NCBI GenBank assembly: GCA_964035545.1
Contig: CAXIUT010000037.1
Location: forward strand, 63,968 to 101,445
Source of the DNA: Bugula neritina
Taxonomy: Eukaryota > Animalia > Bryozoa
Length of the DNA: 37,478 bases
Direction: 5' to 3'
Part shown: positions 1-27,235 of the stretch, one piece after another
Layout of the letters: every line of letters begins with the position of its first letter
Numbering within the stretch: the stretch's first letter is position 1
Position numbers and translations under genes: made by a program
The notes under the pieces: model-generated
What the model saw: the letters and a program-made list of their open reading frames with translations, nothing else
The model's database searches: none
What the model was told of the DNA's origin: nothing

Positions 1-113
1 CCCAACCCCAACCCCAACCCCAACCCCAACCCCAACCCCAACCCCAACCCCAACCCCAACCCCAACCCCAACCCCAACCCCAACCCCAACCCCAACCCCA
101 ACCCCAACCCCAA
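1..113 (+). repeat. Left telomere, (CCCCAA)n
   Basis: Perfect C4A2 tandem repeat at the window start in chromosome 5'-end orientation; C4A2 is the established telomere repeat of Tetrahymena and many other ciliates. Confidence 0.98.
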
Positions 114-11503: not shown

Positions 11504-11589
11504 TTGGGGTTGGGGTTGGGGTTGGGGTTGGGGTTGGGGTTGGGTTGGGGTTGGGGTTGGGGTTGGGGTTGGGTTGGGGTTGGGGTTGG
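11504..11589 (+). repeat. Internal telomere tract (TTGGGG)n, chromosome 3'-end orientation
   Basis: About 14 G4T2 units, two of them G3 variants. Confidence 0.95.
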
Positions 11590-11729
11590 AAAGTGTTGAA
11601 GGCATTTATGGATGAAACATGATGTTAGTTAAATAACTATTTATGATTTTGGCTATTTTGTTTGATTTTTTTTCATCTTTAGAAATTCTGGAATGGTGTA
11701 TAATATTTACAAGCAGGAGTAAATAACGA

Positions 11730-12849: not shown

Positions 12850-13215
12850 ATGGGAAGCAGCCAACCTCAGTAGACTCTCGATCCTAACTTCCAAATGCAC
12901 AAATACCTCAACCAAGGTCTTAATCAAAAACAAATTATGATGATTCGTAGTGCTTTTAATTCCTACGAACCTTCTAACGGATAAATTCCTTTTCAGAAGT
13001 ATAAGGAAGTGATCATGCAAACAGAAGCAAAAGATTTGTTAAATAAAAAATTGCAAAATAGAGAAACTATTAACTTTGACGAGTTTTTTGGAATAGAAAA
13101 AGAAGTATTGTTGAGTCAACTTAAAAAGAATCCAGCTATGGAGATCGACTCAACTCAAGTTTAACCTCCATCCAACTTTTTTTGTCCTTATGCTCAATAA
13201 GTTGTCCGCAATTGA
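12850..13215 (+). CDS. Small degenerate EF-hand (centrin/spasmin N-lobe-like) protein, 121 aa
   Basis: MGSSQP...FQMHKYLNQGLNQKQIMMIRSAFNSYEPSNGEI...ETINFDEFFGI; resembles the centrin GLTEEEVLEIKEAFDLFD...IDFDEF pattern. Confidence 0.6.
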
Positions 13216-13384: not shown

Positions 13385-13750
13385 ATGGAACTGAGTAGAG
13401 AAGTGCAGAACCTGCTATCGCATATCAATCAAACCATCAATTCTCAGAGTAGTGTCTCATCAAAGGTGCAACTTCCTTCTAAAGATCTCTCCATTGGATA
13501 ACTTGCAGAACTTCTTTCAGTACTAGCTAAAGAGTATAATACCACACTTCCTGTTCTGATTCGTAAACTAGACCATGTTTCTGGTGATATTAAAGCTTTG
13601 GATAAGATGTATACTCAAAAAGACTAAAAACTTGAATGGACAGCTGAAGAAGATGAACTTTTGGCAAAGAACCCAGGAATTATGGTAAGATGGAAGGGTT
13701 AAGAGGCTGTAGATCTTCGCAAACGATACCTCAATACTCGTATTAGATGA
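13385..13750 (+). CDS. Stand-alone Rap1 C-terminal (RCT)-like domain protein, 121 aa
   Basis: LSVLAKEYNTTLPVLIRKLDHVSGDIKAL...LEWTAEEDELLAKN...VRWKGEEAVDLRKRYL; intronless, clean ATG to TGA. Confidence 0.65.
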
Positions 13751-19670: not shown

Positions 19671-19740
19671 GGGGTTGGGGTTGGGGTTGGGGTTGGGGTT
19701 GGGGTTGGGGTTGGGGTTGGGGTTGGGGTTGGGGTTGGGT
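19671..19740 (+). repeat. Internal telomere tract (GGGGTT)n, 3'-end orientation
   Basis: About 12 G4T2 units. Confidence 0.95.
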
Positions 19741-26374: not shown

Positions 26375-26442
26375 TCATCATTAAGAATATTAAAATATTA
26401 TATCATTGATTATTAAATATCTTTTCTTTTATATACATGAAA

Positions 26443-26526
26443 GGGGGTTGGGTTGGGTTGGGGGTTGGGGTTGGGGTGGGGTTGGGGTGGGGTTGGGTGT
26501 TGGGTTGGGGTTGGGTTGGGGTTGGG
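26443..26526 (+). repeat. Internal telomere tract, imperfect (GGGGTT)n
   Basis: G4T2 units mixed with G3T2, G4T1 and other variants. Confidence 0.92.
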
Positions 26527-27235
26527 CTTCAAAATAAAGAAATTTGGGCTTTATGTTAGTTTAAATAGATTTAGATGAAGGAAAGTATAACTAAGATTGG
26601 AGATTAATCTTTAAGATTCTCCCAAAAGTAGAAACCTAATAGATCTGGTTGGGTATTGTAAATGTAATATAGAGGACAATCATAAGCCTAATATCCTAAA
26701 AGATCTAACTCAAACTTCTTTTGTAAACATGCAGTTTCTATGTTTATGTACATTTGATTGGAAACAGCAAGAAACAATATAGTTTCAATTGAGGCTATTA
26801 TTTTTCTTAAAGCTTAATTATTAGAATAACTTAATTTCGGTAATTTTAATCTTAAAAAAAGATAGCAATAATATTATGTTTATAAGTTCCTTGAGAAAAA
26901 GTCATTTTCCAAAATTAGACTACATTTCAATTGGTATTTTTAAGATAATTCAGCTGATAATCGAGTCAAAGATATTGAAAAACTGACTTAACTGAAAGCT
27001 AGTTTAACTAGACTTGATTTTTAATAGTAAAAAAGTCATAAAATAGTGAAGACTCTCCTGTAATAGGATATCCATTATCATGGATTTGCAAAATGGAAAG
27101 TAAATTACTTTCTAGATTATGTAAATATAAAATTTCTCAGATATTGAATCAAATAAAAGAATATAAGTGAATAATATGACAGAAATGATTCGTAGCAAAT
27201 ATGAGGACATTGAAATATATTAAATTGATAGATGA
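26527..27235 (+). CDS. LRR-like protein fragment, 5'-truncated and noisy
   Basis: Segments such as SHFPKLDYISI-ADNRVKDIEKLTELKASLTRLDF; begins at the telomere junction; frame needs introns or indels. Confidence 0.4.

Follow-up and report, generated by a model that had tools for sequence, protein, structure and literature searches.

Does a small open reading frame at positions 13385 to 13750 of the stretch of DNA analysed here (37,478 nucleotides, hereafter the window) encode a Rap1 C-terminal (RCT) domain that stands alone, and could such a protein belong to the telomeres of a ciliate? The characterised telomere proteins of ciliates bind the single-stranded overhang or the protein that binds it: TEBP alpha/beta, Pot1a, Tpt1 and Pat1 (PMC3204076, PMC8653790, PMC10813129). 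None of these three papers names a duplex-telomere binder or a Rap1 in ciliates, and we found no published ciliate Rap1 or free RCT protein in the open-access literature, where absence is no proof. RCT domains are six-helix bundles that bind their partners mainly via helices 1 and 2 (PMC8653790). A conserved gene for a free RCT would be the first testable handle on the coat of the double-stranded ciliate telomere.

The 121-codon gene and its genomic setting

The assembly that contains the window comprises 216 Mb in 321 contigs, and its contig C1 is 35.6 Mb long. On this contig, the strongest Myb_Rap1 match and the sole Rap1_C match of the assembly are found on a single strand, 3.7 kb from each other and in the order expected:

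C1:5595914-5596015 and C1:5599695-5599808, same strand: Myb_Rap1 and Rap1_C matches (loci L004, L001, L017 and L018), from a Pfam scan of the assembly; 33-35% G+C

Judged by its sequence, this is the canonical, intron-containing RAP1 of the host animal, and the assembly therefore mixes animal with ciliate DNA. The window itself reads as ciliate because only TGA closes its long frames, its G+C content is ~30% and it carries G4T2/C4A2 tracts; we take it to be a passenger in the assembly of an animal, a bryozoan. The first-pass annotation had placed the gene in a ciliate genome, which has to be corrected to an animal assembly carrying ciliate DNA, given the canonical host RAP1 on C1. A search for partners in the proteome of such a mixed assembly is incomplete by construction.

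The telomeric tracts of the window are distributed as follows:

1-111, minus strand: C4A2 telomeric tract, the sole tract of this kind, at the start of the window
11506-11587, 19671-19738 and ~26440-26530, plus strand: G4T2 telomeric tracts, internal to the contig

Inside the contig the G4T2 tracts recur every 7-8 kb in one orientation, and the same is seen on contigs C10, C11, C14 and C15. Unique sequence stands directly after each tract, for example GGGGTTGG followed by AAAGTG at 11587-11592. This pattern is unlike that of whole two-telomere chromosomes joined end to end; the internal tracts could be genuine, could result from nested alternative fragmentation or could have arisen in assembly as an artefact.

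Read with the ciliate code (table 6), in which TAA is decoded as Gln, the plus strand of 13385-13750 yields 121 sense codons, from an ATG at 13385 to a TGA at 13748-13750, with an in-frame TGA 9 nt before the ATG. With the standard code, the frame is broken by three TAA codons (at 13499, 13625 and 13700):

13385..13750, plus strand: complete intronless gene, 121 codons plus TGA stop in the ciliate code, matched by the family profile
13499..13501, plus strand: in-frame TAA read as Gln (residue 39), aligned with Glu in homologues
13625..13627, plus strand: in-frame TAA read as Gln (residue 81), aligned with Asp or Glu in homologues
13700..13702, plus strand: in-frame TAA read as Gln (residue 106), aligned with Glu or Gln (WKGE/WKGQ) in homologues

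The coordinates and ciliate-code translation of the 121-residue frame agree with those given in the first-pass annotation. The peptide quoted there is correct in all residues but one: the residue after WKG is encoded by TAA and is Gln, so that the segment reads WKGQEAV and not WKGEEAV.

Since TGA is the sole stop, the AT-rich window abounds in frames of 80-200 codons that are open by chance, and an open frame of 121 codons is by itself no evidence of a gene. That the frame arose by chance and is no gene would fit this background, however, we give that reading practically no credence, since it is already refuted by the family, by the substitution pattern and by the start and stop. More than 150 homologues exist and conservation extends across the domain. 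When a profile of 69 family members (A2) was searched against the assembly, it matched the window frame at 149.6 bits (E 3.8e-42), reading through the three TAA codons; against the table-6 translation the score was 153.9 bits and the match spanned positions 5-98 of the 100 in the profile. The conserved N-terminus of the homologues, M-E-(L/I)-(T/S)-(R/K)-E-V, coincides with the ATG at 13385. Comparison with orthologous loci from other samples gave nonsynonymous change (pN) of 0.17-0.39 per site against synonymous change (pS) of 0.76-0.94, which is saturated, with start and stop conserved, and the RCT-gene family is under strong purifying selection. DNA and protein searches found one copy of the gene in the assembly. 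Because the profile match, the low pN beside saturated pS and the alignment of TAA with Gln or Glu all point the same way, we regard the frame as a real, single-copy ciliate gene, known here from sequence comparison.

The protein family and its stand-alone architecture

Homologues were sought with the stop-free pieces of the frame (13385-13498, 13502-13624 and 13628-13699) as queries. Compared by HMMER, with no word filter, against 1.84 billion cluster representatives, the 41-residue piece 13502-13624 recovered 13 small proteins resembling it. Bacterial LysM-repeat proteins (P0001, P0006, P0010, P0011 and P0013) also stood at the top of this search; we discarded them as no relatives because their scores are the sum of many weak repeats (Y-N-T-T-V-x-x-I-K-x-L-N, with a Y-N-T-T-type motif). 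LysM repeat matches of this sort are a trap for short queries.

A word-index search from P0003, a full-length match, and the alignments A1 and A3 yielded ~150-180 distinct proteins of 57-135 residues; the family is thus one of more than 150 small proteins, about 97-135 aa in length. All come from metagenomes or run assemblies, and they are unnamed and carry no precomputed Pfam domain; no homologue bearing the name of a ciliate species, model ciliates included, was among the matches to P0003, A1 and A3. One member, P0022, is filed in NCBI nr under a Bdellovibrionales MAG, and its source is most likely a mis-binned ciliate contig, since the family is otherwise confined to ciliates. The window translation is 75% identical to P0023 over the whole length, 74-75% identical to P0024, P0021, P0020 and P0027, and 89% identical to the truncated P0040, while identity within the family ranges from 45-75% across many ciliate lineages. 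Across 69 sequences, 12 invariant and 16 nearly invariant columns are distributed over all six helices of the predicted domain; each helix contains invariant residues, as do the two tight turns T-T-L-P and V-S-G-D. Shorter members of the family (97-103 aa) lack the N-terminal helix only.

That the protein would carry no BRCT or Myb domain and its RCT would stand alone had been proposed from the window sequence, and both points are borne out. The predicted protein consists of an N-terminal helix, a linker and one helical domain of ~88 residues, so the BRCT-Myb-RCT order of RAP1/TERF2IP orthologues is not found in this protein of 121 residues, which has neither BRCT nor Myb. In five of the five different gene neighbourhoods examined, the RCT gene is separate from its neighbours; in the window and in locus L006 the upstream gene is set apart by another frame and a TGA. 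Further, the filter-free search of 1.84 billion representatives with the 41-residue piece returned no long protein carrying the RCT domain of this family. The neighbours that matter here are the following:

12850-13215, plus strand: upstream neighbour in the window; its first residues, M-G-S-S-Q, may be an N-myristoylation site, and the stretch N-F-D-E-F-F resembles an EF-hand
L006:1981-3942, same strand as the RCT gene: complete Ku70 gene by domain content (Ku_N, Ku, Ku_C and a SAP-like tail)
L006:4001-4369, same strand as Ku70: RCT family member (L006 is contig JBFTWQ010000894.1 of GCA_041192925.1)

In the window and its close relatives (L009-L012), the upstream gene encodes a small protein of N-myristoylation type with EF-hand-like features. 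This neighbour also precedes the RCT gene in a related species, as seen in the read-through product P0075, and the pair is thus syntenic among close relatives. In L006/L007, the former from a more distant ciliate with 43% G+C, the upstream neighbour is the Ku70 gene, whose TGA lies 58 nt before the family member, in another frame of the same strand. We considered this adjacency as a functional hint and read it as coincidence, because it is not repeated in the four other contexts. The neighbours in L014/L015 are pieces of 14-3-3 and ABC-transporter genes, and a CFAP61-like gene lies nearby in L013. No consistent hint of telomeres emerged among the neighbouring genes across the contexts examined, as would be expected if the protein were an RCT- or UBA-like docking module working away from telomeres, for instance as a small subunit of a complex that acts in transcription, modifies histones or handles ubiquitin.

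Sequence and fold evidence for an RCT domain

Rap1_C (PF11626) is the Pfam family matched most often by members of the ciliate family, by 58 of the 69 in profile A2 at E <0.1 (best E 1.7e-4) and by 27 of the 33 in A1 at E <1. The match in P0023 (15.7 bits) and P0003 extends from position 3 to position 84 of the 84-position profile. The gathering threshold of Rap1_C is 24.2 bits, a score reached by none of the 69 members, the best of which lies at about 20 bits. The comparison with Rap1_C suggested in the first-pass annotation has thus succeeded in part: Rap1_C is the commonest family, but never above its gathering score. Scanned with Rap1_C, the whole assembly yielded the RAP1 exon of the host as its sole match, and the window frame was not picked up. 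When the stop-free pieces of the frame were used, Pfam gave only a 14-residue Myb match and the PDB sequences gave chance or Myb matches only; HMMER with profiles A1 and A2 found no RAP1 chain among the PDB sequences at E up to 10. In a language-model search, the TERF2IP/Rap1_C cluster was nearest, at 0.84 for the whole protein and 0.77 for the domain alone, values below the 0.9 level at which the tool is reliable, and a fungal Rap1_C cluster ranked second. Conversely, when the ciliate family HMM was applied to the 424 translated pieces of the host RAP1 locus, the RCT exon came out on top, though weakly (E 0.06). Taken alone, this sequence evidence is weak, being consistent with an RCT domain and not sufficient for one.

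The second commonest Pfam family is Myb_DNA-binding, found in 9 of the 69 members over the first 14 profile positions (W-T-x-E-E-D-x-L-L), at 15 bits (cut-off 24.4). This match, the weak Myb matches in the PDB and an alignment of the last three helices to Myb domains at Z about 3 are what a degenerate nucleic-acid-binding protein of Myb/SANT type would give. We judge such an origin very improbable, as only the first Myb helix is matched in sequence, Pfam finds Myb in 9 of 69 members against Rap1_C in 58 of 69, and Myb falls far below RCT in both structure searches described here. No UBA model was among the repeated Pfam matches.

For the fold, we modelled P0023 with AlphaFold, as the closest full-length homologue (75% identical, with one extra linker residue), and mapped the result to the window. 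A model from 33 sequences was poor (pLDDT 61.5), whereas one from 69 sequences reached pLDDT 76-81 in the domain (mean pLDDT 70). Both models have an N-terminal helix, a linker of low confidence and then six helices, which map as follows:

13391..13438, plus strand: N-terminal helix (residues 3-18), tentative at pLDDT <60; found in forms of ~120 aa and missing from those of 97-103 aa
13478..13735, plus strand: RCT-fold domain (residues 32-117), the range aligned to 3k6g_A, mapped from P0023
13493-13534, 13547-13576 and 13589-13618, plus strand: RCT helices 1-3, mapped from the P0023 model
13643-13669, 13673-13693 and 13700-13741, plus strand: RCT helices 4-6, mapped from the P0023 model

In an exhaustive VIA search, the model was aligned to each of 48,161 representative PDB chains. 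With the second model, three chains of the 48,161 reached Z >=5, and all three are Rap1 RCT domains:

3k6g_A (human RCT): Z 11.1, 86 of 93 residues, rmsd 3.2 Å
4bj5_C (yeast RCT): Z 7.8, 92 residues, rmsd 3.1 Å
3cz6_A (yeast RCT): Z 7.5, 94 residues, rmsd 3.8 Å
Next best, a UBA domain: Z 4.6, 49 residues, rmsd 2.5 Å

The first, poorer model again placed RCT on top (Z 9.8, 6.5 and 6.3), followed by UBA domains at 5-6. Foldseek against the PDB with the second model returned Rap1 RCT domains as the top seven matches, with a program probability of 0.99-1.00 and E-values of only 0.08-0.17; these were chains A and B of human 3K6G and the yeast structures 3OWT, 4BJ5, 4BJT and 3CZ6. The matches to human 3K6G had a TM score (by target) of 0.69-0.71 and an rmsd of 2.4-3.1 Å. 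A fold search of the ESM-Atlas gave nothing above TM 0.4.

The first-pass annotation had named Myb/SANT and UBA-type domains as competing structural matches for its RCT. The best matches are RCT domains (Z 11.1, 7.8 and 7.5), against at most 4.6 for UBA and at most 3.1 for Myb, and the partial matches divide the bundle between them, UBA domains covering only helices 1-3 and Myb domains only the last three helices. Among the PDB matches, the full six-helix arrangement was found in RCT only. The model, made for a homologue with 75% identity and at pLDDT 76-81 in the domain, thus predicts a six-helix bundle whose closest structures are known RCTs, and it supports an RCT fold for the domain of the window protein. 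The RCT identity first proposed from the sequence is borne out above all by this fold, together with the sub-threshold Rap1_C matches, although Z ~11 for a small helical bundle is no proof of common descent.

The half-length matches bear on the reading in which the protein docks in a complex away from telomeres, since many UBA/CUE domains superpose on its helices 1-3 at Z 3-6. In ECOD, RCT belongs to the same homologous group as UBA and RuvA-C (PMC11836899). This explains the partial matches, so that "UBA or RCT" is no true alternative. Speaking against the non-telomeric reading are the facts that Rap1_C is the only repeated Pfam match to set beside the fold, with no UBA/CUE model repeatedly matched, that full-length structural matches are to RCT only, and that the loop after helix 1 (E-Y-x-T-T-L-P), read by eye in the alignment, is unlike the usual hydrophobic loop of UBA domains. 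RCT identity need not imply telomeres, however, as the RCTs of yeast and mammalian Rap1 serve non-telomeric partners too, through Sir3, Rif proteins and TIP60-linked functions. Overall, we hold a purely non-telomeric docking module to be unlikely, though deserving of serious attention.

A longer RCT protein, the proposed role and known systems

The A2 profile found a second ciliate-type locus in the assembly, at C223:4739-5029 (58 bits, E 6e-20), with four in-frame TAA codons. It belongs to a longer gene:

C223:4187-5032 of the assembly (G000; L020:949-1794), plus strand: gene of 281 codons in the ciliate code, 846 bases with the stop codon; 29% G+C

Its product aligns with the family over the last ~100 residues, between L-P/V-P-K-K at the start and R-K-K-Y-L at the end. 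The two proteins are alike in genetic code, base composition and a related C-terminal RCT; they differ in that the C223 protein has ~180 extra N-terminal residues and is far more divergent from the family consensus. About a third of the residues are identical between the two RCTs, which have the signature L-D-x-V-S-G-D ... W-x-x-E-D-E ... R-K-K-Y-L in common. By eye, the N-terminal part of the C223 protein appears to hold a Myb-like stretch (Y-x-L-Q-E-D-L-E-L-L ... S-R-Y-Y-E-C-L); the stop-free pieces of this region matched nothing in Pfam or the PDB. A scan of metagenome loci found no relatives of the C223 protein, and comparing it pairwise with the host RAP1 locus gave no significant match. 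On these sequences, the C223 protein would be a better candidate for "the" ciliate Rap1 than the window gene. Given that the C223 protein also ends in a related RCT, the window gene is probably its minimal paralogue, and much the more conserved of the two.

Taking the evidence together, we consider it probable, though by no means assured, that the window holds a real single-copy gene for a free RCT that is remotely homologous to the RCT of RAP1/TERF2IP, is a paralogue of the 281-residue protein and serves as a docking module. The protein is predicted to fold into a six-helix bundle, with its first three helices UBA-like, that follows one helix and a linker. Like known RCTs, it would have no enzymatic or DNA-binding role, and would instead hold a partner protein by a short helical motif, thereby bridging or regulating a chromatin-bound complex. 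As it has no other domain, it would either serve as a bridge or compete with its longer paralogue. For bridging, the N-terminal helix of the long forms might provide a second contact.

The second of these options would make the free RCT a decoy or regulator that competes with the 281-residue C223 protein for one partner motif and so tunes the complex. Both genes are found in the same ciliate and their RCTs carry a common signature, as this would predict. We find it improbable nonetheless, because the 60-75% identity of the small protein across many species far exceeds the need of a mere competitor and because two RCTs with only about a third of their residues identical would be expected to have distinct partners.

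In the preferred reading of the free RCT as a docking module, the gene and its family, constraint, stand-alone architecture and fold are what the data show, whereas its partner, its location and a link to telomeres are inferred. The likeliest complex, and the most specific hypothesis, would be one on duplex telomeric DNA; we nonetheless treat the telomere link as a tentative possibility and lean against it, since RCTs also serve non-telomeric partners. A more novel proposal is an undescribed Rap1-type duplex-telomere module of ciliates, in which a C223-type protein with Myb and RCT would work with a free RCT that links the duplex binder to end-protection factors, and this we think rather unlikely. 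If it were true, shelterin-like bridges would have a greater age and a wider distribution than a picture of ciliate telomeres with Pot1/TEBP alone suggests.

The free RCT and the longer RCT-bearing paralogue are two concrete candidates for the duplex-telomere side of ciliate telomeres. Should both act at telomeres, the docking module of Rap1 would be older than the divergence of alveolates from opisthokonts, and its study could turn to organisms whose chromosome ends are extremely numerous. If they are not telomeric, the family still shows that the RCT fold occurs as an independent module outside Rap1 and that the Pfam Rap1_C model misses a whole clade.

How, then, does the window protein compare with known systems? 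Helices 1-3 (model residues 34-83) superpose on the three-helix N-terminal domains of UBA, CUE and EF-Ts type at Z 3.5-5.9, but these span only half of the ciliate domain, and no UBA/CUE sequence model matched. The RCT of Saccharomyces cerevisiae Rap1 (3CZ6, 4BJ5, 4BJT and 3OWT) has its core fold in common with the ciliate domain (Z 7.5-7.8 over 92-94 residues, 20-22% identity) but is larger, at about 150 residues with extra helices. Yeast Rap1 RCT binds Sir3, Rif1 and Rif2, and we know of no ciliate counterparts of these three proteins. In human RAP1, the partner of the RCT is TRF2. The human RCT (3K6G, PF11626) is likewise a six-helix bundle, on which 86 of 93 residues superpose, and the motifs W-x-x-(E/D)-D-x-x-L and G-x-x-x-V-x-x-R-x-x-(Y/F) of PF11626 are equally placed in the ciliate protein in an end-to-end, sub-threshold match. 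Identity in the structural alignment is only 15-18%, and the human RCT is attached to a BRCT and a Myb domain whereas the ciliate RCT is free. Since the ciliate protein lies below the Pfam threshold and lacks the BRCT-Myb-RCT architecture, we do not class it as a RAP1 orthologue; it is a stand-alone variant of the RCT kind.
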